IMG/VR virus record: IMGVR_UViG_3300024239_000011
Coordinates: 310,001-374,000 of that record
Length of the DNA: 64,000 nucleotides
Strand: one strand, 5' to 3'
The notes under the pieces are model-generated. The model saw only the letters and a list, made by a program, of their open reading frames with translations. It did not search any database and had not been told where the DNA came from. The position numbers and the translations under genes are program-made. This document shows positions 3 through 50,504 of the stretch, one piece after another (the stretch's first letter is position 1; each line of letters starts with the position of its first letter).

Positions 3-1874
3 GCGGACTACTATGGCTATAATACTTTATATGCGTCATCTGCTGCTAGTGGATATCAGGAAAGCTCAAAGGTCACCTTGCACTTGTACGAGGACATGAC
101 GACTGGAAAATTGAGCTTGCACGTCATAAACGACATGTCCCAGGGATTGGGTGATACCGGTGGTGGTGCTAACTATGTTGTGGTGGATAATCTTCCGACA
201 GGACATCAAGTAATTGCAGCGGATGATCCTGGCGAGGCATGGTCTAATAGTACGACACAGGCTATTGGTAATTTTGGATGGGGTGATTGCTGCACTGATG
301 GTATGGTAATCGATAATATTCAAGATATGACTGCAATTATGATTACCTGTTCTGGGTATAGCGGCGTTGATCAATTCAAGCTTGCGAGCTATGATGGACG
401 CATTCAATATCTCCCTCTGACAACAACACTAACAATCGAGAAGATTGTCGAAGAGATAGACGAAACATTGTTTTTACAAGAAAACCCGGTCGCAGGGCAA
501 TACACAGGTTCTCAAGTTGTATCTTTTACTAAGGCGGCGAATGTTACTGCTAAAATCGCGCTCAATGCCACCCCATCCAATTCAAAAATTATCGCATATG
601 ACGCCAATGAAAATCCATTCATTGCGGTCGTTGATGACGGGCGTGGACGTGTAGTCTTTGATGGCGGGTTCCCTAGATACTACAACTCAAATTGGAACGG
701 GGTTGGGTATTACACTCTGCTCAAAGCAGAGCATATGTTTCTCTATCAATGCATGAACTGGATTGTCAATCCGGTAAAGGTTCGTAATGGTAATAAGTCA
801 ATACTAATATTCAATGACAGCATCACTGGTGAGAATTACCCACTCAGTTCGTTTAATACAACATTGGATGGGGTTGCCGCGATTGCCGGTTATACTCTTG
901 TACACAAGGATCGGTCAAGCTTTGGGGCAGGAGATCAAGTAACAATCCCATTTGTTGAACTTGATCAGTATGCAGCGGTTATTGTGTTTTCAACAAGATA
1001 CTGGGGTTCGCCCAGTATTACGGCAGAAACCGGGGCAAATTTCAAGATATACCGGGAAGCCGGAAACGGTATTATGGTGATCACGGACCATTCCGATGGC
1101 ACAACGTCATTTCAGCATACCGCGAACGTTATTGCAAACCAGTTTGGGGCTAATTTTTACGGGTCTGTGGATAGAACCCCCGTCGCAGTTTCGACGTTGA
1201 AGCAAAATTATGGCGTCCATCCTCTTTGGAATAATATCCCTGGAAGTATTGTTGGGGGAGGTAGTGAAGGTAATATATCCGTCACCAATTTCCCTGATTA
1301 TAATGACACGTCGTGGGTAATTGATCCGGCAGACATTTACACCTTTAATGCTCTTGTCCAAGACGAGATTGGGTTCTTCTATCATTTCTCATTTGGATAT
1401 GCAATTGGCGTTGATGAACCGATACAATTGAATTTTTCACCGGAGACATTGAAGGATGTGGTGAACGTTGATTTCTACGTCGCTCAATATGCCGGTACTA
1501 CGAGTGGGTTTGTGATTGATGCCATCGGAAATGTCCTCGGGTCATTTCGTAATGATGGGACGTTCTCAATGACGTGGTACGATCCAGATTTCGCGACCGT
1601 ACAATTGACGAAAGGTGATGCGCCAATTGTAATCAATATTCGTGTTACGCATCCCTTCTCGTATACCAAGAAAGTTTCTCTGATACGCTATGTGAAGGCG
1701 TGCAATCCTTTAAGTTCATCTTCAATTCTTGATGCACTTCATGGTGCTGAGTTGCGGGATCATCTTGGATCACCAGCAAGGATTATTCGTGACTTCCGCG
1801 ATATTACCAATAATGATCCAAACAAGAAACCATCATTTGCGCTGTCATATCTGTACTACTATTTGCTTCCGTGA
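3..1874 (+). CDS. Virion structural / tail-associated protein, 5'-truncated by window edge
   Basis: Frame is open from base 3 to the stop at 1874. Gly/Thr/Asn/Tyr-rich, with a VVFDGGFPRYYN motif I recall from jumbo-phage virion proteins. Lies upstream of a tail-fibre gene. Confidence 0.6.
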   Translation, partial: ADYYGYNTLYASSAASGYQESSKVTLHLYEDMTTGKLSLHVINDMSQGLGDTGGGANYVVVDNLPTGHQVIAADDPGEAWSNSTTQAIGNFGWGDCCTDGMVIDNIQDMTAIMITCSGYSGVDQFKLASYDGRIQYLPLTTTLTIEKIVEEIDETLFLQENPVAGQYTGSQVVSFTKAANVTAKIALNATPSNSKIIAYDANENPFIAVVDDGRGRVVFDGGFPRYYNSNWNGVGYYTLLKAEHMFLYQCMNWIVNPVKVRNGNKSILIFNDSITGENYPLSSFNTTLDGVAAIAGYTLVHKDRSSFGAGDQVTIPFVELDQYAAVIVFSTRYWGSPSITAETGANFKIYREAGNGIMVITDHSDGTTSFQHTANVIANQFGANFYGSVDRTPVAVSTLKQNYGVHPLWNNIPGSIVGGGSEGNISVTNFPDYNDTSWVIDPADIYTFNALVQDEIGFFYHFSFGYAIGVDEPIQLNFSPETLKDVVNVDFYVAQYAGTTSGFVIDAIGNVLGSFRNDGTFSMTWYDPDFATVQLTKGDAPIVINIRVTHPFSYTKKVSLIRYVKACNPLSSSSILDALHGAELRDHLGSPARIIRDFRDITNNDPNKKPSFALSYLYYYLLP

Positions 1875-1913
1875 TTGTGGTTTGTGGGCGCACGCATTCA
1901 CCATACTCGAAGA

Positions 1914-1920
1914 ATAAATA
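1914..1920 (+). promoter_or_regulatory. Putative T4-like late promoter (ATAAATA)
   Basis: Intergenic ATAAATA about 30 nt before the fibre gene. The same (A/C/G)TAAATA core recurs before many structural and endonuclease genes. Confidence 0.55.
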
Positions 1921-1949
1921 CCAGGAATGTTTGAGTAGAGGGGTTGCGG

Positions 1950-3284
1950 ATGGTCTATTTTATTAACAAATACGATGGCACACAGGTAGCGGCAATTGCC
2001 GAAGGTGCAATGGACACCACCAGCACTTCATTGAAGTTGCTTGGGAGAAATTTTATCAACTATGGTGAGATCATCTCCGAGAACTTCGTTCATCTGATGG
2101 AGAATTTTGCCAGCCCAAACCCGCCTGCTGGGGTGCCATTATCTGGGCAGTTGTGGTTCAACACTACCGACAACAAAATGTATTTGTTTAATGGTACGAC
2201 TTGGGTTGTCGCCACCGCGATCAACGTGGGTAACACCGATGGTGATCCGAATAATAACGGGGATGGACCAAATGCATTACCACCGTCTGGTACAGCGGAA
2301 GGCGACCTCTATTGGGATGCCGATACGCAGCAGCTTTGGGGTTGGACCGAGATTGGCACCCCGCATTGGGTGTTGATTGGTCCGCCCGCACCGGACAGCG
2401 CAAATTCCAAGCTGGAATATCAGCAGATTGATGGTCATGATTGCCTTGTGATTACCATTGGTGGTCAATACATCGCCATCTGGTCAGCGGTATCGTTCAC
2501 TCCAACCACTGCTCCGTGGAATAGCATTTTCCCGGCTGCCGCTACCGGCGTTGAAGGTATTGTTGCCGGATTAACATTCCGCCGCGATGATATGAATAGT
2601 ATCAGAAGTGGTTCGCATTATCCGAGCAAGAACAATAGTTTCAACCTTGGTTCCGCGTCGTTGCGGTGGGATACACTGCATGCGCGTGTTGTAGTTGCTG
2701 ATAATATCCAGCAAACTGGTCAAGGAAGCATTGCTTTTAATAAATTCATGCGTACCGACCAAACCAATGTCCCCGATGTTAATGTGGCTTACGACCTTGG
2801 AAGCACAACGAATCGGTATTCAAAAGTTTACGCAACCGATTTCATGGGTACTTCCACCGCAACGCGCCTTGCCGACTTGGCAGAACGTTTTGCTGCGGAT
2901 GAGCCGATGGACGAAGGTACCGTTGTCAAGCTCGGGGGTTCCGCTGAAATTACCAAGACGACCGAAGCGGCAGATATCGATGTCCTCGGGGTGGTGTCCA
3001 CTCGTGCGGCATTCAAAATGAATGCCGAAGCTGGTGATGATAACTCCCATCCGTTCGTTGCTTTTGCTGGTCGAGTGCCATGCAAAGTTGTTGGTAAGGT
3101 CGAAAAGGGTGAACGTTTGATTACCTCCAATATTCCTGGGGTTGCTATTGGATTCAAAACAGCGTATCCGGAGATTGCTGGTTTTGGTACAAACCGCCAT
3201 GCGCTGGAAATTATTGGCCGTGCGCTTGAATGCAAAAACACTGACGAGGTGGGTTTGGTTATGATCGTGGTTGGTACGAAATAA
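1950..3284 (+). CDS. Tail fibre / baseplate-associated protein with C-terminal intramolecular-chaperone-like domain
   Basis: N-terminal LLGRNFINYGE..ENFVHLMENFA, repeats GQLWFNT..MYLFNGTTW and GDLYWD..LWGW, C-terminal ADLAERF..GTVV..VLGVVST..AGRVPCKV. Confidence 0.75.
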   Translation: MVYFINKYDGTQVAAIAEGAMDTTSTSLKLLGRNFINYGEIISENFVHLMENFASPNPPAGVPLSGQLWFNTTDNKMYLFNGTTWVVATAINVGNTDGDPNNNGDGPNALPPSGTAEGDLYWDADTQQLWGWTEIGTPHWVLIGPPAPDSANSKLEYQQIDGHDCLVITIGGQYIAIWSAVSFTPTTAPWNSIFPAAATGVEGIVAGLTFRRDDMNSIRSGSHYPSKNNSFNLGSASLRWDTLHARVVVADNIQQTGQGSIAFNKFMRTDQTNVPDVNVAYDLGSTTNRYSKVYATDFMGTSTATRLADLAERFAADEPMDEGTVVKLGGSAEITKTTEAADIDVLGVVSTRAAFKMNAEAGDDNSHPFVAFAGRVPCKVVGKVEKGERLITSNIPGVAIGFKTAYPEIAGFGTNRHALEIIGRALECKNTDEVGLVMIVVGTK

Positions 3285-3340: not shown

Positions 3341-4483
3341 TTGAAGGAAATTGATCTCTATCTCGGTGGCTATTTGCTGTGCTGTGGCGACGTATTCGTT
3401 GACCTCGGTGATAAGCGATATGCTGATGCCGTATCGATACAGCCGCTTGCCGGGCGGTATGGCATCTACAACGTTCATCTGGATTCGAACCAGTTGAGCC
3501 TTATCCCCGAGCTTGAGCAGACCTTCCAGGGCGCTACGGTTCGGTTCTACGTCCGCCTGATTGATGGGAACGTCAATTACGCCCCGGCGCCGAACGTCAC
3601 GTTCTTCACCGATGATCAAGCGATCCTTGAACAGATGAATGCCGCAAACAGTGGACTTAATGTGACGTTCTTGCTCACCCCGGATGTTGCAATACAGCCA
3701 GTTGTTTCCCTGATTGAAACTTCGCAAAACACGATTCGCCTCCAACTGCTAGTGGTGAAGAATGGTACGGCTGTGAAGTGGAACCCAGGTACCCTGGATG
3801 AGGTGTTCTTTCACGTCTTTGATCATGTGGTTCGCACGGGTAATCCGCGTATCGTATTCGATTATCCGAGTATGCGTGGCGCAGAATACCATTGCTGGTT
3901 GGATCAGTATTATTTTGTCAATGGTGATACTGAGATTCAATGTCCACTAGTTGGGCATCTTCGCCCCTATGATTTAAATTATGAGCCACTAACCACCGAA
4001 TGCGCGTTATGTGCATTTAATAGTAAGTGCTTCAACTGTCGATGGGCGAACTATCATAATACCGCATCTTTTGTGAATACTGGATGTCGTGATGTGTCTG
4101 AGTTTTACGACAAATCATTGACTACCGTACACAACGTGCAATTATTTCAAGTGTTCAGTCAGATGTATGATAAATTCCGCGAGCAACCGGAAGAAATGCT
4201 CAAGGTTTATACGTTTCTGATATCGGAGAACCGCCCTGATCAATGGATTTCGGTGCGGGAGGTATTTGGTGAATTGCTCAAGGAAGCAACCACCAAGGAT
4301 TATGCATTTGATTTTATGGTTTCTGTGATCTCGGCATATACCGATCCGCTTGCGGTATTTTCCACGGAAACTGTGCATACCATTGGGCGAAATATGTTTG
4401 AGATTGCCGAACCAAATCTCAATCAGCTTTTAGGATACCTATTCCTTATCGAATACGCGAAGATTTACCACGGGGAAGGTTAA
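3341..4483 (+). CDS. Degenerate radical SAM/SPASM-like protein (no CxxxCxxC)
   Basis: Has a SPASM-like CALCAFNSKCFNC..GC cluster but no N-terminal CxxxCxxC. First gene of the translationally coupled rSAM run. Confidence 0.5.
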   Translation: MKEIDLYLGGYLLCCGDVFVDLGDKRYADAVSIQPLAGRYGIYNVHLDSNQLSLIPELEQTFQGATVRFYVRLIDGNVNYAPAPNVTFFTDDQAILEQMNAANSGLNVTFLLTPDVAIQPVVSLIETSQNTIRLQLLVVKNGTAVKWNPGTLDEVFFHVFDHVVRTGNPRIVFDYPSMRGAEYHCWLDQYYFVNGDTEIQCPLVGHLRPYDLNYEPLTTECALCAFNSKCFNCRWANYHNTASFVNTGCRDVSEFYDKSLTTVHNVQLFQVFSQMYDKFREQPEEMLKVYTFLISENRPDQWISVREVFGELLKEATTKDYAFDFMVSVISAYTDPLAVFSTETVHTIGRNMFEIAEPNLNQLLGYLFLIEYAKIYHGEG

Positions 4484-5703
4484 TGCATAAGATCACCGGG
4501 AAGGTTAAGGGGACGGTCCTGTTCTATGATGAAAGGACCGCGATTCTCTACGACCATGACATGGTTCCGATCACCCAGACCCGTGACTATCAACGGTCTA
4601 AGTTTGGTGGTGCTATTGGTTTGTATAACATCGCCAGCGTGCAGTTTGGGCAATTCTGTAATCTCCGATGCACATACTGCCTGCAACGCACTATAGGAAG
4701 TGTTGATAGCGTTCATACCCCGGAGCGTGGTACGAAAATCCAACAGACGGTTGAGTATATTAGACGTACACTTGATCCGTGTATTCCAACCAAGGTTGAT
4801 TTGTGGGGCGGCGAACCGCTGTTCTATTGGGATGATCTGAAGGAGGTTGTCACCAGCCTGGAACCGCATGGGCAGATGCACTTCACGGTGTTTACCAATG
4901 GTATGGCACTCAAGGAAGAACATCTGGCGTGGTTCGCCAGCCGTCCATCCAAATTCACGGTGTCATTAAGCCATGATGGGTTTGGACAAGCCGCGCGTGG
5001 TAAAGACGTTCTGGACAAAGTGCTTGATTTGTTTGCTCACATAATTGCACCGAATATTGATTATTCAATTGCAACTACTGTGTCAAATACCAACCACGAC
5101 CTTCTTGCGCTGAATGATTTGTTCATGGTAGCACTGGATCGTCATGGGCTGCGGGATAGGGCGAAGTGGATCATTGAAATCCCACTGGTGTTCAGCGCAA
5201 AGGATGCTTTTGACCCCAAGCAGTTGCATAAGTTTACCGAGAACCTTAGGGCGTTCTTAACAGAAAATGAGCGCGGAAACCCACGCATTCTTAACAACAC
5301 CTTATGGTCTACTTTCGATCTGTTCGGTATATTTGCCCTGCTGAATCGTTTCAACAGCAAACATATACCAGGGTTCTACCGGTGCCATTTGTCCTATGAT
5401 AATGCCGTGGTTGTCAACACCAATGGTGAAGTGCTTCTCTGTCCTCATTCAACTTCTCCGACGCATGTGTTGGGGTCGGTTGACGGCGGTCAGGTCAAAC
5501 ACAAATCCGAGGTGATTCGCACCGGATATGATCCGCGTTGCGACGGTTGCCTCGTTCGTGATTTTTGTCGAAGCAGTTGCCCAATCATTGGTGGTACTTT
5601 TGAAGATAATCACAAAGTAATGTGGGCGTACTTCTCGACGTTGTACGAGTTCGCCTTTAAGCGTCTTCTTATGGAAGATGAAGTCGTAATCGAGCGAGTG
5701 TGA
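4483..5703 (+). CDS. Radical SAM / SPASM-domain protein
   Basis: CNLRCTYC, WGGEP, FTNG, SHDG, and C-terminal CDGCLVRDFCRSSCP. Confidence 0.92.
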   Translation: MHKITGKVKGTVLFYDERTAILYDHDMVPITQTRDYQRSKFGGAIGLYNIASVQFGQFCNLRCTYCLQRTIGSVDSVHTPERGTKIQQTVEYIRRTLDPCIPTKVDLWGGEPLFYWDDLKEVVTSLEPHGQMHFTVFTNGMALKEEHLAWFASRPSKFTVSLSHDGFGQAARGKDVLDKVLDLFAHIIAPNIDYSIATTVSNTNHDLLALNDLFMVALDRHGLRDRAKWIIEIPLVFSAKDAFDPKQLHKFTENLRAFLTENERGNPRILNNTLWSTFDLFGIFALLNRFNSKHIPGFYRCHLSYDNAVVVNTNGEVLLCPHSTSPTHVLGSVDGGQVKHKSEVIRTGYDPRCDGCLVRDFCRSSCPIIGGTFEDNHKVMWAYFSTLYEFAFKRLLMEDEVVIERV

Positions 5704-5704
5704 T

Positions 5705-6976
5705 ATGAAATTCAAGATCAGCGCCTTGGATACCCAAGCAACCATCATCTATGACAACGAAGCTAACATCTTTTTTGACGACACGGGAGTGCCGCTCACA
5801 CAAACCGCGAATTACATTCGTAGACGCGCGGCCAATTGGGACAAAACGCCGACGTGGCAAACATCCACTAATATTCGGCAAATCAAAATTTCTCTTGGGC
5901 AGTTCTGCAACTATTCCTGTACCTACTGTATGCAGAGCCAAATCGGTGAAGTGGGTAAGGAAGGTTTTGCGAAGAACGTCAACACCGACCGCATCATCGA
6001 AATCCTCAAGACCAATTACACGGTCCCCGACAACGTTCGCATCGAACTGTGGGGTGGTGAACCATTCTTCTATTGGGAAGATATGGTCAAGCTCATGGAG
6101 GCGTTCGATCATGAAACTGCTGAATTCCAGATTTTCACCAACGGATCAACTTTGCGACGCAAGCACCTTGATTTTTTCAAGGGTTTGAAGAGCCGTAAGA
6201 TCGATCTGGGGCTGTCGCACGACGCAGCCAAACAGGAAACCACCCGTGGTAAAAACTATCTCGCTGAAAACCTTGAACTGCTTCGCGAGTATCGTGAATT
6301 TACGAATATCCAACCTTTCTTGAGTGCCACGTTGACCAACGTGAATTATGATTTGTTGGAAATCAATGACTACTTTCGTGCTATGTTGGAGGCGCACTAC
6401 GGGGATACGAACCTGTGGATCAACTTCGACGTGCCGATGATTCACGAAAAGCAGAGTCTCAAGTTCTCACAAGACCAGCTTGATGGTTATAGCGCCAACT
6501 TGCGCAAGTACCTTCAAGCGTGTTGGGAGGATAAGAATCACGAGCGTATGATCCGTGGTTCGTTTTTTGAAGGCGGACAGCCAAGCTTCAAGCGCATCAT
6601 GGAATCCTTCCATTCCAAGGATATTGAGTCATTCATCAAATGTGCAGTGGGTTCGCCTAATTCGTTGACCCTCGATCTGGAAGGCAATGTTAAAACCTGC
6701 CCACACGCCGGGGATGCACATATATTTGGGAACGTCCTTGAGAGCGAAGACCACATTTTCAAGAATGATCCCACCTATGTGCGCACGGTAGAATACGACC
6801 AGTGTCAAAAGTGCTTGGTGCGCCGCTTCTGCCAAGGCGGTTGCCCTATCGTGATTGATAAAAACACGTGGTACTCGTATCACCATGTTTTGTGGACCCA
6901 CTACAGCACCATGTTCCAACTGGCTATGGAATTGTTGCTAGGTAGCAAAAAAGTGATGATCACAAATGTTGACTGA
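5705..6976 (+). CDS. Radical SAM / SPASM-domain protein
   Basis: CNYSCTYC, WGGEP, FTNG, CQKCLVRRFCQGGCP. Paralog of the preceding gene (shared N-terminal YD..I.D..VP.TQT). Confidence 0.92.
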   Translation: MKFKISALDTQATIIYDNEANIFFDDTGVPLTQTANYIRRRAANWDKTPTWQTSTNIRQIKISLGQFCNYSCTYCMQSQIGEVGKEGFAKNVNTDRIIEILKTNYTVPDNVRIELWGGEPFFYWEDMVKLMEAFDHETAEFQIFTNGSTLRRKHLDFFKGLKSRKIDLGLSHDAAKQETTRGKNYLAENLELLREYREFTNIQPFLSATLTNVNYDLLEINDYFRAMLEAHYGDTNLWINFDVPMIHEKQSLKFSQDQLDGYSANLRKYLQACWEDKNHERMIRGSFFEGGQPSFKRIMESFHSKDIESFIKCAVGSPNSLTLDLEGNVKTCPHAGDAHIFGNVLESEDHIFKNDPTYVRTVEYDQCQKCLVRRFCQGGCPIVIDKNTWYSYHHVLWTHYSTMFQLAMELLLGSKKVMITNVD

Positions 6977-8009
6977 TCTGTGCCGCAACGTCTCTATCAT
7001 CAATTTGTTGCTGACCAAAAAGTGCAACTACTCTTGCTCATATTGTCACCAGCTTCACAAAGACGATGTGCGACTTGCGGTATCACCACCCGAGCGTATC
7101 CACGAAATTGTGGAAAAGCTTGCTACGATCAATGATATCCCGAAGAACGTGCGATTTTTCGGCGGGGAAACGCTACTGCGTTTCCCCGATATCAAAGCCT
7201 ATTTTGAGGCATACCAACCGAACTATCCGGCACTGGGGTTTAGTGTTTATTCGAACGGATCACTCCTAACTCCTGACATGGGCGAATTCCTCGCCAAGAA
7301 CGGCGTAGACCTCACATTATCCATCGATGGGTATACAGAGGACGGTCAGCTTGAAAAGGACTATAAACGCCTAGAAACCGTCTTCCCGGCGATCTATCGC
7401 ATCTACGCCACTCACGGACGTATGATATCGGTGTCGGTGACCATCGACATTGCCAAAGTTCAGGCAGCGAAGAACCTGATGGTGTTGTTTACTCGGCGTT
7501 TTCCACGCACCAAACTTTTCATTTCTCCCGTTTTCCATTCGAAGGGTGATGGGAATACCCCATGGAGCATGGATGCGATTGATGACCTTCTGGGGTTTGT
7601 GGAGACCATCAACCAACAACGGGCAACACCGATCCTACAGGGATTGAATGTGATCTCATCGCCTCAGAAATGTATTAGCGTGGATTGGACATTGGCAGTG
7701 GACCTGTCGGGCGATCTGTCCAGTTGCTTCTTCACGATCACCGACAAGCTGACCTTCCCCGAGTACGTCTATGGGAACCTGTTGGACGACCGATTTGACG
7801 CGCCCCAATATGCTGCGATCTTGGAGCGGAAGCGTCAGATGTTCGACAACCCGTATTGCGCGGCATGCAGGTTCAAAGAAACCTGCATATCTTGCTCGAC
7901 GTGCGGGATGCTGTTCAACGAGAACCGGTGGTTCGAAAACGGCGAATGCAAGCCCTTGGTACATTTCTTGTCTGGGATGCATCACATGACCAGGGATGAA
8001 CCACTATGA
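6966..8009 (+). CDS. Radical SAM / SPASM-domain protein
   Basis: CNYSCSYC, FGGET, SNG, SIDG, CAACRFKETCISCSTC. Confidence 0.9.
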   Translation: MLTDLCRNVSIINLLLTKKCNYSCSYCHQLHKDDVRLAVSPPERIHEIVEKLATINDIPKNVRFFGGETLLRFPDIKAYFEAYQPNYPALGFSVYSNGSLLTPDMGEFLAKNGVDLTLSIDGYTEDGQLEKDYKRLETVFPAIYRIYATHGRMISVSVTIDIAKVQAAKNLMVLFTRRFPRTKLFISPVFHSKGDGNTPWSMDAIDDLLGFVETINQQRATPILQGLNVISSPQKCISVDWTLAVDLSGDLSSCFFTITDKLTFPEYVYGNLLDDRFDAPQYAAILERKRQMFDNPYCAACRFKETCISCSTCGMLFNENRWFENGECKPLVHFLSGMHHMTRDEPL

Positions 8010-9511
8010 ATGAAATTACCACTCTGCTGCGTAGCCGTGGGGTCTTTCAAGTGGTACTCACCAATCGCTGCAACTACAATTGCAACTACTGCTATCAGGA
8101 ACGCAATTTTAAGAAGTTCCCGAACGAGTTCGATAGCGCCGAGCAACTTGATCGTGTTTGCGGTAAATTGGTCGAACACCGCAAGGACGACACCCACTTC
8201 GAGTTCCAATTTCTCGGCGGCGAACCGCTGTTGAAGAAAAATGTTTTAATGAATTTTATGCGGGATTATGCATGGAAATATCCCAAGGTAGTATTCAACG
8301 TAATCACCAATGGTAAACTTCTCGATCACGAAACGGCAGTAGAGTATATCACGAGTCACCCTCTGGCGAAAATCTATTTTTCCTGTGACGGTATTGACCT
8401 GAATACCAATACGCATCCCAAGACCTGGGAACGTATTGCGATACTGTATGACCGGCTCTATCAACGCTTCCCAGAGCGCATTGGCATCATCCCGGTACTA
8501 ACCAGCAGTACCATCCCTAATTACGTTGCCCTATTGGATTTGATGGCGGAAAAATATCCACTCAGTCATGTTCATGCATTGGCCGCAATCAGCGACCATT
8601 TCGATACCAACTTCGAATGGTCGCCCGAGCATATTCGCAGCGTCGGGGAACAAATCCGTCCGTTCTTCCTGAAACACCCAGGTTGGACCATTGACTATTA
8701 CATGTGGGATTATCCGCTCGATTCCTTCCTCGATTCGGCGGACGACCCGGCGGTGATGCCAAACGGTGACATACATCTGATGCCATCGTATTTTATGGGT
8801 GAAGCAGCAGACCTAAGCAATAAACCAGACTTCAATGTAATCACCGGGGAAGTATACCCGTACCTTGCCCAGAAACAGATCAAAGAGCGGTTGATTCAAG
8901 CGGCGAAAACTGCCAACTCGCGCTGTCAGACATGCCCGATTTCGGGGCATTGTCTTCCGATGAAATTCTTCACATTGGTACACTTACCGGACGAGCAAAT
9001 TACCGCAGAGACCGTGGTTGATGCAGAATGTAACACCATGCTTGATTTCTTCTGGAATATGCCGGTGTTCGCACATTTTCCCACCGGCATATTTCAGAAC
9101 CTTCAACAGCAAGTCCAACTGTTCCAGAAGTATCGGACACGATATGTTCGGGCGCTTTATGTTTTAGACCGTTTGGCTATTCCAGTTCTGCAACTTCTAA
9201 ATGACGATTTTGTTGAGAATATCGAAAAACTTGGCGTTGGAAAATATTTCTATCTAGATATGTATGGGGTTTCCCGCCATACCGAAGAAGTGCGCTCCGC
9301 ATATAATACTCCATTGCGGGATATTTTTTGTCATTTCAAGCATCATCCGAAACGTCGTCCACTTCACCCGGCATTGGTATGTAAAGTTGTTCGTGAATTG
9401 TTGGATAAACCGACCGACCATTTGTTTGAGTTAATTATTCCGAACCTTTACCACAAGGTCTATTATGGTCCAACGTGGCATTGGTCGTTTGACGACACTT
9501 ATAGGTGGTAA
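8006..9511 (+). CDS. Radical SAM protein with partial SPASM and C-terminal extension
   Basis: CNYNCNYC, LGGEP, ITNG, SCDG, CQTCPISGHC. Confidence 0.9.
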   Translation: MNEITTLLRSRGVFQVVLTNRCNYNCNYCYQERNFKKFPNEFDSAEQLDRVCGKLVEHRKDDTHFEFQFLGGEPLLKKNVLMNFMRDYAWKYPKVVFNVITNGKLLDHETAVEYITSHPLAKIYFSCDGIDLNTNTHPKTWERIAILYDRLYQRFPERIGIIPVLTSSTIPNYVALLDLMAEKYPLSHVHALAAISDHFDTNFEWSPEHIRSVGEQIRPFFLKHPGWTIDYYMWDYPLDSFLDSADDPAVMPNGDIHLMPSYFMGEAADLSNKPDFNVITGEVYPYLAQKQIKERLIQAAKTANSRCQTCPISGHCLPMKFFTLVHLPDEQITAETVVDAECNTMLDFFWNMPVFAHFPTGIFQNLQQQVQLFQKYRTRYVRALYVLDRLAIPVLQLLNDDFVENIEKLGVGKYFYLDMYGVSRHTEEVRSAYNTPLRDIFCHFKHHPKRRPLHPALVCKVVRELLDKPTDHLFELIIPNLYHKVYYGPTWHWSFDDTYRW

Positions 9512-10890
9512 TCATGGACAACCCTTTCAGTCAGGTCTATTGGATCAATCTGCTCCTGACTAATAAATGTAACAAGCAGTGTTCGTACTGCTATGAGCAG
9601 CATAAAGCCGAGTTTGAACGGTCGTACATCAATGCACATCGTGTGGATGAAATCTGCGCGAAGATGGACACCATGAACTCGCTTCAGAAAACCCTCCATT
9701 TTTTTGGCGGCGAACCCATGCTGAAGTTCGACACCATCATGGAGTACATGCGGGCATCGTCCCATAAATACCCCACATTGTCTTACGTGATTATCACCAA
9801 CGGCACGCTACTGACTCCTCAGAAATTCGAGGATTTCGTTTCGCACGGCGGCTCATTCTACATTTCCTGCGACGGCTGGGGGATCGATAACACTGACATC
9901 ACAACCAAGGATTTCAGTGCTATCAAGGATGTGGTTGAGGCATGCTTCCCGGTGGTCGCAGCCTATGATAAACGCATTACGTTCGACGTAGTTGTGCATC
10001 CCCGTGAGGTCGCGTCGTTCGGGCGGTTTATGCAGTACCTCGCCGGAAGTCCGCATTTCGAGCAAATCAATATCCACATCAAGCCATTGCTATACAGCAT
10101 GACCGATGGGTTGGTGCGCTGGGATGACGCAGCGATTAATCAATTCTTACAGGAATGTATGAATGCCATTGTGAAATCAAAGGGCATCAATTTCGAGATA
10201 GAAGGGTTCTACGAGAAGTCATGGGGCACGTGCATGACCATGGCAAACAACCTGAATGTTGATGTTGAGGGTAATTTTTCAGGGTGTTATTTTCTACTGA
10301 ACCAACATAAAGCCACCTCGGCATTCGATGATGCCATTTTTGGCAACATTCTAACCGGCGAGATTGATACTGCCAAAATCGCCAACTTTAAACGCCTGGA
10401 ACAGGAACTCTACCAGTCCTCTAAATGCCAATCTTGCGTATTGAACCCAAAATGCTTCCAGTGCAGTGCTGGACTGTACACAACCCTTGGAAAGTGGTAC
10501 GACAACGACAAGCATTGCGAAATCGTTATCCCATTCATCCAACGGTTGAATTCCTTCCAAGCCATGAAAGAGGATGCATATATCATTGGCTGCCTGAAGG
10601 AGAAAATCCAGGAACATGGGTCTGAGTGGTTTGTGACTCGCCTTAAGTATTGGACGACAGTTCACATGCAAGCGACGTTGCTGGAAATTTGTAATGCACA
10701 TATCCCAGCACAAAACATTATGGCGGGAAATGCGCCACTTGATTTGGGTCAGTGGCTCAGTGATGCGGGGGCAAAGCAAGTAGCAGAGCTTCATCACATT
10801 TTCACGCCTGCATTGGCTGATCTTTCTGCTCAAGATCAGTTTACGCTTTGCGTTGCGCGTGTGATTGAGAAAGAACATCCCAAAACCTAA
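9505..10890 (+). CDS. Radical SAM / SPASM-domain protein with C-terminal extension
   Basis: CNKQCSYC, FGGEP, ITNG, SCDG, CQSCVLNPKCFQC. Confidence 0.92.
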   Translation: MVIMDNPFSQVYWINLLLTNKCNKQCSYCYEQHKAEFERSYINAHRVDEICAKMDTMNSLQKTLHFFGGEPMLKFDTIMEYMRASSHKYPTLSYVIITNGTLLTPQKFEDFVSHGGSFYISCDGWGIDNTDITTKDFSAIKDVVEACFPVVAAYDKRITFDVVVHPREVASFGRFMQYLAGSPHFEQINIHIKPLLYSMTDGLVRWDDAAINQFLQECMNAIVKSKGINFEIEGFYEKSWGTCMTMANNLNVDVEGNFSGCYFLLNQHKATSAFDDAIFGNILTGEIDTAKIANFKRLEQELYQSSKCQSCVLNPKCFQCSAGLYTTLGKWYDNDKHCEIVIPFIQRLNSFQAMKEDAYIIGCLKEKIQEHGSEWFVTRLKYWTTVHMQATLLEICNAHIPAQNIMAGNAPLDLGQWLSDAGAKQVAELHHIFTPALADLSAQDQFTLCVARVIEKEHPKT

Positions 10891-10898
10891 TAGAAAAC

Positions 10899-10935
10899 CC
10901 TCCATGGACTGCTAAATACGTGCAGTCCATGGAGG
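10899..10935 (+). promoter_or_regulatory. Late promoter inside an RBS-sequestering hairpin
   Basis: Perfect 14-bp inverted repeat cctccatggactgc / gcagtccatggagg. TAAATA is in the loop and the GGAGG RBS is in the 3' arm. Confidence 0.75.
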
Positions 10936-10941
10936 TGCTTG

Positions 10942-11805
10942 ATGGTGGTAACGGTAATCAGCGGCGGTGATAATTCATCCAGCTATGCAAAAGACAAAGC
11001 TTTTGATAATTCGATAACGACATCCTGGCGAAGCTTACAGACCGGCGTTGATGTTGTAAATGCCGCATGGCTCGGTCAAGATTTCGGTATTCCAGTTTAC
11101 GTGATTTCTGCGAGCTACCGTAAAGGGTCATACGATCCGGCATCGGTTGCGATACAGTACAGTGATGATGGATTGTCATGGACGAATACTGGTGTAACGT
11201 TTACCAGTTTTAGCAACGCGGTGGAAAAGAAAAGTATAGCAGTGGGTACACCGCATCGTTACTGGCGTGCAATTGCCACAGGTGCCACGGCAGGTACCAA
11301 CCCATGGGAAATTGTAGAATTGACTTTCGGCATCGCCACAACAGGATTACCCAAGTACATAACGAAGGTAGTGTCTCTTGGCGCAATAACCAATTTGAAC
11401 GCAACGGCATTGAAGGCACGGGTGAATACGTTGAAGACAAAGTTTGTTCAGAACGGCATTCTCACGGCAGTAGATATGCAGGAATTTTGGAGCATTCTTC
11501 GGGATTTCAGCCAACACTACCACCCATACACGGAAACGAAGCAGGCGATTGATAATATTCAGGCTGGTATTGATGCTATTACCGATTCAACAACAAAGAC
11601 CAATGCCCAGAACGCCGCAAACCCTCATAAGGTAACCGTTTTGAGTAACACCGGTCCTATATTATTTGACAATCCGATCACATCTGGGTTTTCTGTGGGG
11701 TTTGTATTGGATAAAGTGACAATGAATACGTTTATTGAAATGATAAATGCATCCCAACGTCATAAACATAGTGTAACTGATCGTTTTTTTGACACAGCAG
11801 TCTAA
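10942..11805 (+). CDS. Discoidin (F5/8 type C)-like domain protein with two HxH fibre-like modules; probable virion protein
   Basis: KAFD..TSW..WLGQDFG..IQYSDDG..W..HRYWR..WEIVEL, then QHYHPYTE and RHKHSVTD. Preceded by a late promoter. Confidence 0.65.
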   Translation: MVVTVISGGDNSSSYAKDKAFDNSITTSWRSLQTGVDVVNAAWLGQDFGIPVYVISASYRKGSYDPASVAIQYSDDGLSWTNTGVTFTSFSNAVEKKSIAVGTPHRYWRAIATGATAGTNPWEIVELTFGIATTGLPKYITKVVSLGAITNLNATALKARVNTLKTKFVQNGILTAVDMQEFWSILRDFSQHYHPYTETKQAIDNIQAGIDAITDSTTKTNAQNAANPHKVTVLSNTGPILFDNPITSGFSVGFVLDKVTMNTFIEMINASQRHKHSVTDRFFDTAV

Positions 11806-11816
11806 GGAAGTCCGAT

Positions 11817-12200
11817 ATGGCTGAACAAAATGTTCCTTCGAATACCGATGCAGCAACGTATTCGACCACAGCAGCGGAAACCCCGCAAATCACCGCACCG
11901 CAAATACTGACGGCCAACATGTTCCAAAACATGTTGAATGTGCTGGAAAATGCTCTCGGTAGCCATACCCATACGCATCAAGATACCGCATTGAATGCGT
12001 GTACGTGTTGGAACTATACACCGTGTGACCGTTTAGTGACCAACCTTACCTGTGTTGATTGTTCGCCTGGAAATTGTGCTGGGCAGTGCCGCACGTGTGG
12101 TACCGCGCAATGTGGGACTTATGAGTGTGCCTGTGCTGATGTTCAGGGATGGGTTGATAATACTCCTGGGGGTAACGGGACACCCTGCACACTGCCTTGA
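11817..12200 (+). CDS. Cys-rich protein, putative radical SAM substrate (HxH leader plus 12-Cys core)
   Basis: Cys-free N-terminal half ending SHTHTHQD, then 12 Cys in about 66 aa. Adjacent to six rSAM-like genes. Confidence 0.65.
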   Translation: MAEQNVPSNTDAATYSTTAAETPQITAPQILTANMFQNMLNVLENALGSHTHTHQDTALNACTCWNYTPCDRLVTNLTCVDCSPGNCAGQCRTCGTAQCGTYECACADVQGWVDNTPGGNGTPCTLP

Positions 12201-13788: not shown

Positions 13789-14172
13789 ATGGTCAATTTT
13801 GATATGCGCATTCTGGTAGTCGATGACTATGCTACGATGCAGAAGATTGAGCGCAATTTGCTCAAGCAGATTGGTTTCGGGAATGTTGATACCGCAAATG
13901 ACGGCTCCCAGGCACTTCAAATGCTTCGGTTGCAGCACTATGATCTTATCCTGTCCGATTGGAACATGGAGCCGATGACCGGTCTGATGTTGTTGCGCGA
14001 AGTGCGCAATGACCCTGCCCTGAAGCATATCCCATTCATCATGGTAACTGCGGAAACTAAACAGGAAAATGTGATCGCTGCTCGGGAAGCAGGGGTGTCC
14101 AACTATATAATTAAACCCTTTACGGCGGATACATTAAAGAAGAAACTACAGTCGGTTATCGGGGATTTCTAA
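13789..14172 (+). CDS. cheY: Chemotaxis response regulator CheY
   Basis: Single receiver domain: ILVVDD, phosphoacceptor in SDWNMEPM, MVTAE, YIIKPF. GAGG RBS. Confidence 0.92.
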   Translation: MVNFDMRILVVDDYATMQKIERNLLKQIGFGNVDTANDGSQALQMLRLQHYDLILSDWNMEPMTGLMLLREVRNDPALKHIPFIMVTAETKQENVIAAREAGVSNYIIKPFTADTLKKKLQSVIGDF

Positions 14173-14624
14173 TGTTCTCTCGAAAGCGCGATGCGCTTGA
14201 ACTCCTATGCACGTTGTACGTCATTTTTAAACTGGCAAAAACCAAAGGCGACCTCGCCCTTGAGTCGCATTGCGAGCAACCAGAACACAGCCCGATATTT
14301 GTTAATTCCAGCTTGTCAAAAGCAGAAAAGGTCGTACTTGCGGATTCGATGCGACTCTTAACACTCGGGTTAGATAGTCCTGATGATGTGGAACGTTTTA
14401 TGGTCGGTATGTTTGTCATATCCGTCAAACATACCGACAGGATGGATGTGATTATTGAAGCATTTGTGGCACATTGCAAAGGCTATGCACCGCAAATTTC
14501 CATTGAATTTGCTCGTGCCGCGTTCGGTATTAAAAACCGCCCGACTTTTCAGGAAACTGAGGAAGCAATCACTAACCTCCTTCTTGATGATTATCAGTAT
14601 AAATGGCAACATCACGGGAAATAA
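14172..14624 (+). CDS. Soluble MotA-like protein (two cytoplasmic segments fused, no TM helices)
   Basis: LELLCTLY..LALESHCEQPEHSPIF..DSMRLLTLG and GYAPQISIEFAR..RPTFQETEE match the MotA cytoplasmic loop and C-tail. Coupled to cheY. Confidence 0.75.
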   Translation: MFSRKRDALELLCTLYVIFKLAKTKGDLALESHCEQPEHSPIFVNSSLSKAEKVVLADSMRLLTLGLDSPDDVERFMVGMFVISVKHTDRMDVIIEAFVAHCKGYAPQISIEFARAAFGIKNRPTFQETEEAITNLLLDDYQYKWQHHGK

Positions 14625-24035: not shown

Positions 24036-24875
24036 ATGACCTCAATTTTTACCATTGATGTTGAGCGCATACAAATACAAAAGTACAGATTAACACAACA
24101 TCCGTTACTCCATGGTAATTATTACCTACGGACGATTGATGATTTGCGACTGTTCATGGAACACCATGTATGGTGTGTGTGGGACTTTATGAGCTTGTTA
24201 AAGACATTACAGGTAAATGTTGCACCTTCCTGTAATATATGGACACCAAAACGCAATATACCAAGTGAAGCTGTTCGGTTAATAAACGAAATCGTTTTGT
24301 GTGAAGAAAGTGACATTACTCCGGTTGAAAACCAGTACATGAGCCATTTCGATTTGTATTTGACTGCCATGCGTGAAATTGGTGCTAATTATACTCACGT
24401 ATTGACTTTTACTAAACGGCTCCACGAGCATCTGGAAAATAATAATTTTGATGAAAATACATGGAAGACTTTTCACGAATCTAATCCAGATATAATTTCA
24501 ACAATCCCGCCTGCTGCGTTGCGCTTTGTGACAAATACCATGAAGTGGTGTTTAGTGCCACATCACGCAGCCGCAGCTTTTTGCTATGGACGCGAAACAA
24601 TTATTCCAGCCATGTTTCAGAATTTGCTTCGGCAATTGAATATTGGGAGTCACAAGGCTCCATTTTTTCATTTTTATCTTGAGCGTCATATTCAAGTAGA
24701 TGGTGAAGAACACGGAAATGCCGCCGAACGACTTATTACAATTTTGTGCGGTAATGATCCTCACAAAATACTTGAAGCAGAGAAAATTGCATTAGATGCA
24801 ATAGAAACTCGTTTTCAATTATGGTCAGATGTAGAAAAATTATTGATAAAAAATATTCGTCAAACCGTACTATGA
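24036..24875 (+). CDS. DUF3050-family heme-oxygenase-like protein
   Basis: FMEHHVWCVWDFMSLLK, INEIVLCEESD, SHFDLY, GRETIIP, YLERHIQVDGEEHG. Confidence 0.85.
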   Translation: MTSIFTIDVERIQIQKYRLTQHPLLHGNYYLRTIDDLRLFMEHHVWCVWDFMSLLKTLQVNVAPSCNIWTPKRNIPSEAVRLINEIVLCEESDITPVENQYMSHFDLYLTAMREIGANYTHVLTFTKRLHEHLENNNFDENTWKTFHESNPDIISTIPPAALRFVTNTMKWCLVPHHAAAAFCYGRETIIPAMFQNLLRQLNIGSHKAPFFHFYLERHIQVDGEEHGNAAERLITILCGNDPHKILEAEKIALDAIETRFQLWSDVEKLLIKNIRQTVL

Positions 24876-29422: not shown

Positions 29423-30364
29423 ATGTCTAGTGGTATATATCGTATTCGCAATGTAATCAATAATAAATCTTACTACGGTAGTTCGAAAGATATCGAAAAA
29501 AGATGGTGTCAGCATCAAAGTAATCTCAATTGCGAACGACATATCAACCCACATCTACAACGTGCTTGGAAAAAATACGGAGCAGACAATTTCGTGTTCG
29601 AGATAGTTGAACTCGTGGAGGTCGATTTATTACTTGATGTTGAGCAGCAATACTTGGATGAAAACGTAGGTGGGTATAACATCGCACCGGCTGGTGGTGG
29701 CGATACAACCTCTAAACATCCAGATCGTGAGGCGATTATTGCTAAGCGCGTTGAAAGTGTTATCAATCGAAATGCTAAGTTATGCCCCGAGGAATATGCA
29801 AGGATTTATTGTGGGAAAATTGGTGAAAAGAACGGGATGTATGGAAAAACACACACGGAAGATGTAATAAGAAAAATCAAAGAAAAACTTCACAGTTGGT
29901 ATTCAGAAAATGATGGATACCGTAAAGGTAAGACGTTCGAAGAAGTGCATGGTGCCGAGATTGCTGAACACTTAAAACGAAAATTAAGTGAGTTTGCGTC
30001 TACCAGAACCGGTGCCAAAAATCCATTCTACGGTAAACATCATTCGGACGAAGCCAAACAAAAAATACGAGAAAAACACCTTGGCAAACCGCTATCTCAA
30101 TCAGCTAAACTGGCTATTACCGGAGAAAATTCTGCAAAATTTCAAGGATACTACCACACCCCATGGGGTGTGTTTCCTTCCACCCCACAAGCACAAAAGG
30201 CTCACCCATATCTATTATCCAACACCATTAACACTTGGTGCAAGAAATGTGATGTGGTAATTTCAAGAACTGGAAGATCGCGATACCTTCAGGAAATCGG
30301 GGAAAGTGTCGTGGGAAAAACCTACCGCGAAATTGGGTTTTGGTTTGAAGAAAAGGGCGCGTGA
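29423..30364 (+). mobile_element. Free-standing GIY-YIG homing endonuclease with NUMOD3 repeats
   Basis: SGIYRIRN..SYYGSS..RWCQH; repeats KNGMYGKTHT and KNPFYGKHHS. Convergent on thyA. Confidence 0.9.
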
Positions 30365-30385
30365 TGTACGCGCCCTTTCTTTTTA
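30351..30385. terminator. Bidirectional terminator
   Basis: aaagggcgcgt-gatgt-acgcgcccttt. Confidence 0.75.
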
Positions 30386-31216
30386 TACCGAAATCGGCAT
30401 GTCAATTTTGGGGTAACATTGGTAATTTTCGAGTTTGAAATCTTCGTATTTGAAATCGAAGATGTTCTTGACCTCGGGATTAATCCACATACGCGGCAAC
30501 GGATATGGTTCTCGGGTTAATTGAAGGTCGATCTGCTCGATGTGGTTGGTGTAGATATGTGCATTCATAATCGAGTGTACAAATTCACCCGGTTCAAGGT
30601 CGCATACTTGCGCCACCATCATGGTCAATAATGCATAGCTGGCTATATTAAAGGGAATTCCGAGTCCTACGTCCCCTGAACGTTGAAACAGTTGGCATGA
30701 CAATCTACCATTAGTTACAGCAAACCCAAAAGTTGTATGGCACGGGGGGAGCGCCTGAAGCCCGACAGCAGCGTTCTCATGTGGTTTCTTCTTGGGATCG
30801 GGTAGCAGAGCCGGATTCCACCCAGACACAATCAGACGGCGGCTGTCGGGGTTGCTCTTGATCTCTTTGATCAGGTCCGCGATCTGGTCGATGGTCTGTC
30901 CACAATTTCCGGGCCAAGACCGCCACATCTTGCCATAGACGGGACCAAGGTCACCCTCGGGTGTTGCCCATTCGTTCCATATATTAACGCCGTTGTCGGT
31001 CAGGTATTTGATGTTCGTGTCGCCCGCCAGGAACCACAGCAGTTCATGGATGATCCCCTTGGTGAAGACCTTTTTGGTTGTCACCAGCGGGAAACCCTCG
31101 GACAGATCAAAGCGCATCTGGTACCCGAACACCGAATAGGTACCGGTACCGGTGCGGTCCTGCTTGTACACGCCGTTTTCACGGATGTGTTTCAAAAGTT
31201 GAAGATACTGTTTCAT
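30383..31216 (-). CDS. thyA: Thymidylate synthase
   Basis: [37 protein letters not shown]. Confidence 0.97.
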
Positions 31217-38923: not shown

Positions 38924-39370
38924 ATGTCGAAATTCATTCCATCATTGATTGTTACGTTGTTAGTGTCGTCACCGTCCTACGGTCTGGACATTTCGGGGAA
39001 AATTACAGTTTTGGGGGAATGCCAAGCGACATATGCGCAATTGGTCATGATTTCCAATCTAACTGCCGGTTTCTTAACCATGTCTAATGCACCATCCGAA
39101 CAGGTACTCGGTTTTGCGCGTATTGGGCAGCACGCATTGGATGGGTTTGATCAAGCCGACGCAGAAGCCGAACGAATCATTGGAAATGCATCACCAAAGG
39201 ATCGAATTCGGCTTGATGTGATTAATAATCAAACTTTTCAAGAAACCACCAAGACGTGGGAAGAATTAAAAGTGTCGCTTACCACCGGGGCGTCCACCGC
39301 AACAATGTTCATGAAAAATTTGGTGGAAAAATCAAATCAGTGTGATGGTATATTGTCACAGATCGACTAA
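38924..39370 (+). CDS. Putative secreted protein
   Basis: Signal-peptide-like N-terminus; ATAAATA upstream. Confidence 0.55.
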   Translation: MSKFIPSLIVTLLVSSPSYGLDISGKITVLGECQATYAQLVMISNLTAGFLTMSNAPSEQVLGFARIGQHALDGFDQADAEAERIIGNASPKDRIRLDVINNQTFQETTKTWEELKVSLTTGASTATMFMKNLVEKSNQCDGILSQID

Positions 39371-48465: not shown

Positions 48466-48891
48466 ATGTCCATACTTGAAATCAATGACGTTGTTCGGGT
48501 GCAAATGCGCGAGATCATCACCCGTGCGTCAGTGAACCCATATACACAGGCGCAAATTGAGGCATTGATGCGCCTCGGGTCGGCTTCCGGTACTGCCGCC
48601 GACCCTGCGGAAAGAAACAAACTTTTCACTATGACGGTTCCTCACGGGTTTAATGTAACATACACCCATGAGCATCAACCATTTGGTCTTGCACGGCATT
48701 TGTCAGTGAGCGTGCTACGCAAAGGTCGTGTGCCGAATGTTCCCGCTATGGAAATGATCATGCAGGAATTCGGTTTCACATCCGATTTTCAATTGTGTAT
48801 AAACAACGGAACTGTATGGAACGAGAAAATTCCCAACGGAAATTATGCTATCAATGTCATCGAACCAGTTGAAGGATGGGGTGCGGTTTAG
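48466..48891 (+). CDS. Hypothetical protein
   Basis: RHLSVS..GRVP motif; ORF tiling. Confidence 0.6.
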   Translation: MSILEINDVVRVQMREIITRASVNPYTQAQIEALMRLGSASGTAADPAERNKLFTMTVPHGFNVTYTHEHQPFGLARHLSVSVLRKGRVPNVPAMEMIMQEFGFTSDFQLCINNGTVWNEKIPNGNYAINVIEPVEGWGAV

Positions 48892-49241
48892 CTTTCTAGC
48901 CCTTCGGCACATGAAATATTGATCGCGATGAGCGTATCGAGTTTTTCTGGTGTTGGGTTCTCGTAGATTTCCAAGGTTCTACGATCCACGAATGCCGATA
49001 ACCGCAGCAAGTTGGTTCGAAGGTCCGCCGGAAGTGGGCAGTCGTCGGACATCGCATCAGCCTGTACAACCGTCCAGAAACGCTGATTGTACTTTAACGC
49101 ATCGTTGAGGTTGTCGGGGTTCCAGTTATTACGAAGGTCTTGTAATCGCCCAATAGCCGTGCGCAATACACGTGCTTGCACTAGGCGATCACTAGCAAGT
49201 ACCCGATTTGCTTTTTGATATGCGCCGATCCCATTAGACAT
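48888..49241 (-). CDS. flaF: Flagellar biosynthesis regulator FlaF
   Basis: AYQ..ALKYNQRFWT..PLPADLRTNLLRLSAFV..LIAINISCAEGL. Confidence 0.9.
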   Translation of the reverse strand: MSNGIGAYQKANRVLASDRLVQARVLRTAIGRLQDLRNNWNPDNLNDALKYNQRFWTVVQADAMSDDCPLPADLRTNLLRLSAFVDRRTLEIYENPTPEKLDTLIAINISCAEGLES

Positions 49242-49617
49242 TTAGAAGCTCTCCTTCGTACTCGATCAGTTTTTGGCATTCGCGTAGGGCTTTGTAATAC
49301 TGCCCAGCAACAAGATGTTGTTGGATTGCGATAATGAAGGGGTACATAGATGGTGCCGCTTTCATGAGTTCGCCAACGTGATCAAAGAAATCTGTTTGGT
49401 ATTTTTCGATATTGTCCGTGTCTACGTACATCATCTGAATGAACAGGTACGCGACTTTCGATGGGGTGTCGGCGGTTTCAACCGTCAGCACATCTTTCTG
49501 ACGAAGAATTGGCACATCATTGTGGATAGTAATTTCCGTTTTACCGGTTTCAGCACCGGTAATCACGGCGGTACCGACAATGATTTTCTCATTGGGTTTG
49601 AGAACAAGTTTTAGCAT
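49234..49617 (-). CDS. flbT: Flagellin translational regulator FlbT
   Basis: LKLVLKPNEKIIVG..ILRQKDVL..ADTP..YLFIQMMY..YYKALRECQKLIEYE. Confidence 0.92.
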   Translation of the reverse strand: MLKLVLKPNEKIIVGTAVITGAETGKTEITIHNDVPILRQKDVLTVETADTPSKVAYLFIQMMYVDTDNIEKYQTDFFDHVGELMKAAPSMYPFIIAIQQHLVAGQYYKALRECQKLIEYEGELLNV

Positions 49618-49664
49618 TTCATTTGCTCCGCAAGGTCGGGGGTGCCAAAGCACCCCCTATCCTA

Positions 49665-50504
49665 TTAACCGAAAAGACGCAGAACGCCTTGAGCGGACTG
49701 ATTCGCCATGCTCAGCGAGTTAAGAGCAAGCTGGCTACGGGTCTGAAGGGCGAGCAGCTTGGCGCTTTCGTCATTCATGTCCGCATTGGTCAGATCATCG
49801 GCACCAGCACGGTGAGTGGTGATCATGTTCTTGGTGAAATCCGAGCGAATCTTCAGCAAGCTATTGGAGCTACCCAGTGTTGCTGCCGTTGAACGGACGG
49901 TGGACATCGCAGTAGACAAAAGCGCAATGTCGGCATCGATTGCAGCAGTACCAGTTGCCAGGGTCGCATTACCCCAGTCCCCAGCCGCAGTCACCGCCAA
50001 TCCGGTTGCATCACTAGCCGTACCGGTGACAGACATTGATGCGGAACCATCACGATTGAAAGTGACCGTGAGACTGTCCGGGGTACCCTTGATGAGGTTC
50101 ACACCGTCATAGGTAGAGTCCGATGCAATCTTGTCCAACTGAGTACGAAGTGCATCGTACTGAGTTTTGAAAGCAGTGCGGTCAGCCGCAACCGAAGATG
50201 CCTTAGCTTGCTCAGCAAGACCCTTCATTTGTTTCAAAACACCTTCAATGGCGGTTAGACCATCGGTTGCAGTCTTAACGGTATTCATGGCATTGGTAAT
50301 GCCATCCTTTAGAGAAAACAAGTCGTCGGCAGTATCATAGAGATTTTTGGCCCGGAAATAGTTCACCGGGTCATCAATTGCACTGGCAACTCGCTTACCA
50401 GATGCTAAGCGTCCTTGTACGACGCTCATATCACTGTCCGTCCGTTGAAGAGACAGCAGAACATTGCGAACACTTGCATTGAGGGAAATGTTGTCCGTAG
50501 ACAT
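49665..50504 (-). CDS. Flagellin (short alphaproteobacterial type)
   Basis: SVRNVLLSLQ..RLASGKRVASAIDDP, YDGVNL, ADMNDESAKLLALQTRSQL..SMANQSAQGVLRLF. Confidence 0.95.
   Translation of the reverse strand: MSTDNISLNASVRNVLLSLQRTDSDMSVVQGRLASGKRVASAIDDPVNYFRAKNLYDTADDLFSLKDGITNAMNTVKTATDGLTAIEGVLKQMKGLAEQAKASSVAADRTAFKTQYDALRTQLDKIASDSTYDGVNLIKGTPDSLTVTFNRDGSASMSVTGTASDATGLAVTAAGDWGNATLATGTAAIDADIALLSTAMSTVRSTAATLGSSNSLLKIRSDFTKNMITTHRAGADDLTNADMNDESAKLLALQTRSQLALNSLSMANQSAQGVLRLFG

Follow-up and report, generated by a model that had tools for sequence, protein, structure and literature searches.

A soluble MotA cytoplasmic domain encoded next to cheY in a huge uncultivated phage: a candidate stator mimic from an apparently undescribed family

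EpsE of Bacillus subtilis, a glycosyltransferase-family protein that acts as a soluble flagellar clutch, reportedly uncouples rotor and stators by binding to FliG (work attributed to Blair et al. in 2008). The protein described here, a phage-encoded MotA derivative that we call MotA-TGI, would resemble EpsE in its proposed mode of action only: the two share no homology, no match to glycosyltransferase family 2 was found in MotA-TGI (the one match in Pfam and NCBIfam is MotA), and MotA-TGI is a copy of the stator's own interface. The c-di-GMP brakes of the YcgR/PilZ type act at the interface between MotA and FliG and alter motor output (PMC10140304). The site of action that we propose for MotA-TGI is the same, but MotA-TGI is not homologous to these brakes, lacks a PilZ domain by Pfam match and shows no sign of binding c-di-GMP. 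Among phage proteins, inhibitors of type IV pili serve superinfection exclusion (PMC8764522), and phage-borne CheY-like and flagellar genes, CheY and flagellin, have been reported earlier (PMC10579305; preprint 10.64898/2026.05.02.722434). MotA-TGI shares with all of these that it is a phage-encoded candidate modulator of host motility, yet none of them derives from MotA or mimics a stator, and the term MotA does not occur in the preprint, which deals with Nitrosospira phage.

The nearest relative is MotA itself (TIGR03818; PF20560 and PF01618; TGI5 type, Pseudomonadota), to which MotA-TGI is homologous over the entire cytoplasmic interface and the C-terminal tail; the charged residues of the rotor contact and the predicted fold of this domain are also shared. 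It differs in lacking the four transmembrane (TM) helices, the ion pathway (the region of P173 and P222) and the MotB partner, and for these reasons it cannot be a stator. The name TGI for the cytoplasmic region of MotA, the torque-generating interface, is taken from a 2025 paper on MotAB evolution, in which no stand-alone form is described (PMC12505986). In our literature search, neither TM-less MotAs nor stator mimics nor fusions of MotA with FliG_C turned up. The MotA protein of phage T4, a middle-gene transcription activator, is unrelated and has the name alone in common with MotA-TGI.

A transmembrane-less MotA gene coupled to cheY

We analysed a 64-kb window, that is, the whole stretch of 64,000 nt presented here. 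The MotA-TGI gene occupies positions 14172..14624 on the + strand, with an intact frame of 150 codons, and is preceded by a gene for a CheY-type single-domain response regulator of 127 aa (13789..14172, +). The ATG of MotA-TGI (14172-14174) and the TAA of cheY (14170-14172) have one nucleotide in common (TAATG), and a Shine-Dalgarno-like GGGGA motif, found by reading the sequence, lies inside the 3' end of cheY, 6 nt before the ATG (14161..14165, +). A scan for sigma-70 promoters and terminators around the gene pair gave nothing interpretable. On the variant contigs L002 and L003, which were compared for dN/dS, the cheY and motA genes are nucleotide-identical.

The CheY protein aligns without gaps to E. 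coli CheY at 51% identity, so that all six key residues (D12, D13, D57, T87, Y106 and K109), which include the phospho-acceptor and the switch residues, are in place. Its best NCBIfam family is, by a wide margin, CheY (NF007901) at 154.5 bits, which falls short of the equivalog cutoff of 189, and it matches Pfam Response_reg (PF00072) with E 4.4e-28.

The downstream protein matches the NCBIfam MotA profile TIGR03818 in two partial stretches with E 1.4e-17 and 63.8 bits, below the curated equivalog cutoff of 303.8 bits; in this alignment, residues 4-78 correspond to profile positions 71-148. No Pfam family matched even at E <= 1, MotA_ExbB (PF01618) and MotA_N (PF20560) included. Aligned to E. 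coli K-12 MotA, whose sequence was taken from the annotated genome, MotA-TGI spans residues about 72-152 and about 234-287, which are the loop after TM2 (the TM2-TM3 loop) and the C-terminal tail after TM4. TM1-TM2 have no counterpart, and TM3-TM4 are replaced by a linker of about 8-10 residues. The 19-residue Kyte-Doolittle maximum is 0.99, compared with 2.2 in E. coli MotA. Identical in both proteins are G93, L97, E98, R131, L132, G136, the GYAP motif at 251-254, E259, R262, R270, P271, F273, E275 and E277 (E. coli numbering), and the rotor-contact positions R90 and E98 correspond to K23 and E31. MotA-TGI is therefore confirmed as a true MotA homologue that has no TM segment and consists of the cytoplasmic torque-generating interface alone. 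The first-pass annotation, made from the sequence without database searches, had described a TM-less MotA made of loop and tail, with K and E at the two rotor-contact positions, translational coupling to cheY and no adjacent motB; each of these points holds, the last because profile matches of the neighbouring ORFs returned no MotB/OmpA-like gene.

Structure prediction agrees with this assignment. AlphaFold2 gave pLDDT 79 for MotA-TGI when three sequences were supplied; the use of 23 family members raised this to pLDDT 91.3, with pTM 0.86, for a compact all-helical domain of eight helices. The ESM Atlas model of MotA-TGI superposes on the model of a full-length MotA cluster (297 aa) with a query-normalised TM score of 0.86 over 146 residues; MotA-TGI is thus the cytoplasmic domain of MotA as a fold in its own right. 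Against the PDB, Foldseek searches with both AlphaFold models returned no significant match; MotA/PomA chains reached ranks 2, 4, 21, 29 and 40 with E about 1-5 (8gqy_A came second with probability 0.60 and 8ucs_C fourth, followed at lower ranks by 8ucs_G, 8brd_C and 6ysf_C). These weak scores are likely due to the discontinuity of the domain in MotA and to the fact that the solved stator structures are all of the TGI4 type, which is distant from MotA-TGI. No look-alike was found in the viral BFVD with Foldseek, and phmmer with the single protein gave no match in the PDB.

A family of soluble TGI domains and its FliG_C partners

A word-indexed search returned two short proteins of the same layout and without a Pfam channel domain, P0002 (206 aa) and P0003 (179 aa), which are 50% and 45% identical to the phage protein. 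We built a profile from these two and the phage protein and obtained 545 matches among 1.84 billion cluster representatives. Full-length MotAs match this profile in two separated stretches; about 27 representatives of clusters at 50% identity, roughly 150-240 aa long, show one contiguous match and no TM segment. The short-form representatives are all metagenomic, with 0 NCBI accessions, and JGI labels a few of them 'MotA'; the ESM Atlas contains matching unnamed clusters, one of them with 216 members. We defined the family by (i) a single contiguous profile match across loop and tail, (ii) the lack of a TM segment and (iii) equivalents of G93, E98, R131, G136, G251, P254 and R262, and the phage protein has every one of these features.

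Conservation was determined for 23 TM-less members whose identity to the phage protein is only 22-50%. All 23 share the equivalents of G93, G136, G251, P254, R262 and P271 without variation. At the rotor contacts, conservation is at least that in full-length MotAs: 21 of the 23 members have K or R at the R90 equivalent, compared with 69 of 86 full-length proteins, and at the E98 equivalent 22 members have E and one has D, compared with E in 84 of 86. The TM-less architecture is thus that of a family in which the rotor-contact charges are conserved, which the first-pass annotation had not noted.

In a maximum-likelihood tree on common columns, the phage protein falls into a short-form clade (Group A, support 97-99%) that is nested among MotAs of Rhodospirillales and other Alphaproteobacteria. 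A second short-form clade (Group B, support 97%) lies beside E. coli-type MotAs. The two placements suggest that the short form arose independently at least twice; an AU test did not reject a single origin (p = 0.20), and we therefore do not claim convergence. Among 185,579 species genomes, the closest full-length MotAs belong to Magnetospirillum, Phaeospirillum and Rhodospirillaceae MAGs, and no short form is present among the best 80 loci. The soluble TGI domains are apparently an undescribed family. Since the same architecture is found throughout a diverse family that includes cellular-looking members, the phage may have acquired a gene that was already TM-less. The two precise deletions proposed in the first-pass annotation are correct insofar as both hairpins are absent, but they are not events specific to the phage, the architecture being common to a diverse and well-supported clade.

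Several further features were observed in the family. Tandem arrays occur in P0085 (545 aa, three soluble domains) and P0132 (295 aa, two). P0044 (184 aa) keeps an N-terminal TM segment and lacks TM3-TM4 alone, which may represent an intermediate architecture or an artefact of assembly or gene calling. In the alignment, the cellular Group A members P0003, P0038, P0040 and P0042 share an acidic N-terminus (MAEDLEEDF), and P0002, P0039, P0041, P0045, P0116 and P0126 end in an acidic helix of the L-[ML]-x-E-W type, whereas of these motifs only a W near the C-terminus remains in the phage protein. Group B proteins end in an amphipathic ..FF.. helix, presumably reminiscent of MinD-type membrane-targeting sequences. 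In locus L006 (991-3058), the P0003 gene lies directly 3' of two TerD genes and a TerC gene of the tellurite-resistance family. Two MAGs labelled Bacteroidota and Solirubrobacterales (L022, L053) carry MotAs nearly identical to those of Magnetospirillum, with branch lengths of about 0-0.02, and their placement is probably due to binning contamination.

The recurrent partner of these domains is FliG_C, an association absent from the first-pass annotation. Seven proteins from both Groups A and B are clear fusions of a MotA-like domain with Pfam FliG_C: P0148 (E 1e-10), P0151 (1e-13), P0193 (8e-18), P0075 (2e-16), P0082 (2e-12), P0111 (4e-15) and P0126 (5e-13). One more, P0154, is borderline at 22.4 bits against a cutoff of 23.3 bits. 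In some of them, such as P0075, P0111 and P0126, a hydrophobic hairpin lies between loop and tail, without TM1-TM2. Stand-alone members adjoin FliG_C genes in three independent contexts: P0040 is followed by a 304-aa FliG_C protein, P0043 by a 303-aa FliG_C protein with a 4-nt overlap, and an 81-aa mini-FliG_C comes before P0093 on each of two contigs. FliG_C is the sole domain detected in these separate partners, which are not canonical FliG, and the 303-aa protein has a hydrophobic N-terminus. The partner loci include L015 626-1537 and L012 9741-9986. Such pairs would invert the topology of the motor, with a soluble 'stator' domain and a possibly membrane-anchored 'rotor' domain. An HMM search of the 64-kb phage window found no FliG_C-like ORF.

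When two domains are fused or kept adjacent, this is a classic sign that they interact physically. R90 and E98 of MotA contact D289 and R281 of FliG (PMC7564593), and the fusions and adjacencies mirror these contacts; the soluble domain probably retains its partnership with FliG_C, for which they are the strongest support. The FliG binding put forward in the first-pass annotation has thus gained indirect, comparative support (FliG_C fusions, adjacency and charges kept across 23 members).

A huge phage with flagellar genes

The gene and its flanks are carried by IMG/VR contig IMGVR_UViG_3300024239_000011 (543,035 bp), and the window contains a virion structural protein (PHROG E 4.9e-76) and a tail-fibre-like protein. 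It further encodes a high density of GIY-YIG/HNH homing endonucleases (29423-30364, 32301-33242, 59364-60656 and 60858-62204), ThyA (30383-31216), a T4-type RNA ligase and a polynucleotide kinase/phosphatase, in addition to long co-directional runs of small ORFans. The source of MotA-TGI is a huge uncultivated phage, in agreement with the phage origin given in the first-pass annotation. An 869,618-bp ENA MEGAHIT contig and short JGI contigs of two other samples contain the gene and its flanks in identical form, which brings the samples with an identical gene to four. The 869,618-bp contig may be chimeric or a non-phage element; to our knowledge, this length, if it is that of a true single genome, exceeds the largest phage genomes.

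On the opposite strand of the window, we identified a flagellin gene (49665..50504, -; 279 aa with Flagellin_N and Flagellin_C) and genes for the alphaproteobacterial flagellin translation regulator FlbT (49234..49653, -; PF07378, E 4.7e-37) and its partner regulator FlaF (48888..49241, -; PF07309, E 8.5e-27), none of which the first-pass annotation had brought up. In deposited phage genomes, flagellin is essentially absent, the sole matches being two tiny and dubious Listeria fragments. The host to which the MotA-like gene, FlbT and FlaF point is an alphaproteobacterium, probably of the Rhodospirillales type.

A second, divergent phage-like contig (L010, 38 kb) carries the same flagellin/FlbT/FlaF trio (1617-3254; 62%, 56% and 45% identical to the trio of the window) and a short TM-less MotA, P0039, along with T4 RNA ligase, the anti-Pycsar protein Apyc1 and many ORFans. 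The contig of P0002 is syntenic with L010, and both have an upstream gene of 396-399 aa in common. No CheY gene lies beside P0002, P0003 or P0039, which makes the coupling to cheY specific to the MotA-TGI phage. The search for TM-less MotAs in other phages, which the first-pass annotation had recommended, yielded P0039 and nothing in deposited genomes: neither the region nor the MotA-TGI protein matched any of 50,697 deposited phage genomes in megablast and tblastn searches. Further scans of viral contigs returned the same IMG/VR contig alone, and a metagenome scan returned mostly full-length MotAs and no additional phage example.

Proposed action on the host motor and other genes of the window

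With a probability of roughly one half, we consider that MotA-TGI mimics the stator in soluble form: deployed alongside the phage CheY, it would sit on FliG_C of the host rotor and thereby uncouple the motor. Made along with this CheY, MotA-TGI would bind the C-terminal domain of host FliG through its conserved K23/E31 face and compete with the membrane-embedded MotA5B2 units for the FliG contacts that are required in assembly and for torque. The motor would thus be uncoupled or stopped, by a mode more like a clutch than a friction brake; the brake of the first-pass annotation is a hypothesis. In parallel, the phage CheY would act on FliM/FliN, with host CheA or acetyl phosphate as the source of its phosphoryl group. 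The unidirectional motor of several Alphaproteobacteria is slowed or stopped by CheY-P, and the effects of the two phage proteins could therefore converge. Speculatively, the phage might benefit by sparing proton-motive force, by holding the host cell in place or by excluding flagellum-dependent phages. Contacts between stator and rotor are weak and transient and are presented by a MotA pentamer, for which reason a monomeric soluble domain may bind poorly.

The TGI domain is seen in several forms: alone, in tandem, or fused to or paired with FliG_C. A wider and more tentative proposal is that stand-alone TGI domains are undescribed, widespread regulators of stator-rotor contacts, one of which was captured by huge alphaproteobacterial phages and deployed with CheY, flagellin, FlbT and FlaF as a module for takeover of the flagellum.

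Because cellular relatives carry a FliG_C partner of their own, the ancestral target may have been this partner and not flagellar FliG. MotA-TGI could accordingly be directed at a non-flagellar host module, acting on a cellular pair of soluble TGI and FliG_C-like proteins or replacing its TGI half. The cellular-looking Group A members that are fused to or encoded with their own FliG_C proteins, and the non-canonical partners with a hydrophobic N-terminus, speak for such a target. We nevertheless regard it as unlikely, since MotA-TGI is nested among genuine flagellar MotAs of Alphaproteobacteria, keeps the residues that contact flagellar FliG and is found in a phage context of adjacent CheY and genomic flagellin, FlbT and FlaF.

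The phage gene set, with its flagellin, FlbT and FlaF, allows readings other than a simple shut-down of the flagellum, and we infer a functional link between the flagellin cluster and the MotA-TGI gene. Together with these proteins and a complete CheY, MotA-TGI might remodel the flagellum instead of inhibiting it, through changes in assembly, in the composition of the filament or in rotation bias that might, for instance, modify the cell surface or dispersal. The joint occurrence of the trio and a TM-less MotA in two divergent phage contigs would fit this. Remodelling is quite unlikely in view of the fact that a TGI domain without an ion channel cannot generate torque and that the cluster lies 34 kb from the MotA-TGI gene on the other strand; moreover, we know of no mechanism by which a TGI domain would promote flagellar assembly.

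Preservation of motility, with which the flagellin genes are also compatible, would result if MotA-TGI served as a decoy for MotA-binding regulators, such as the PilZ-type c-di-GMP brake YcgR, and kept the motor running; titration of a brake protein was the alternative raised in the first-pass annotation. YcgR interacts with MotA as well as FliG (PMC10140304), and the G93/S96 region of MotA is kept in the family (G26 does not vary, and 22 of 23 members have A or S at position 29). A PilZ or other brake gene is associated with none of the examined family members, where FliG_C is the recurrent partner, and we consider the decoy very unlikely. That MotA-TGI is a non-functional remnant of a captured motA, as the loss of all ion-conduction parts and of a motB partner might suggest, is barely credible given the intact frame, the translational coupling to cheY, the confident fold, the identity of the gene across four samples and, above all, the same boundaries and invariant interface residues in about 27 divergent clusters; on this family-wide conservation, the pseudogene reading was rejected.

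If the proposed stator mimic does bind FliG_C, it would be the first known viral protein that acts on the flagellar torque-generating interface, and a naturally soluble, well-folding rotor-binding domain of MotA would become available as a reagent for the study of stator-rotor contacts outside the membrane, a long-standing problem. The family comprises tandem repeats, operon pairs and fusions to FliG_C, and it suggests that cells have regulators derived from motor parts which have escaped recognition. In the phage, the combination of CheY, a candidate stator mimic, flagellin and regulators of flagellin translation suggests that control of host swimming can be an organised part of infection by huge phages.

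Other genes of the window include a KdsD-like arabinose-5-phosphate isomerase (39367-40419) and a DUF3050/heme-oxygenase-like gene (24036-24875). Upstream of cheY, five radical-SAM/4Fe-4S genes lie in series (4483-10890, +), followed by the gene of an F5/8 type C domain protein and, at 11817-12200, a 127-aa ORF whose C-terminus is rich in Cys; the region 4483-12200 (+) is a possible phage-borne, RiPP-like cluster for peptide modification.
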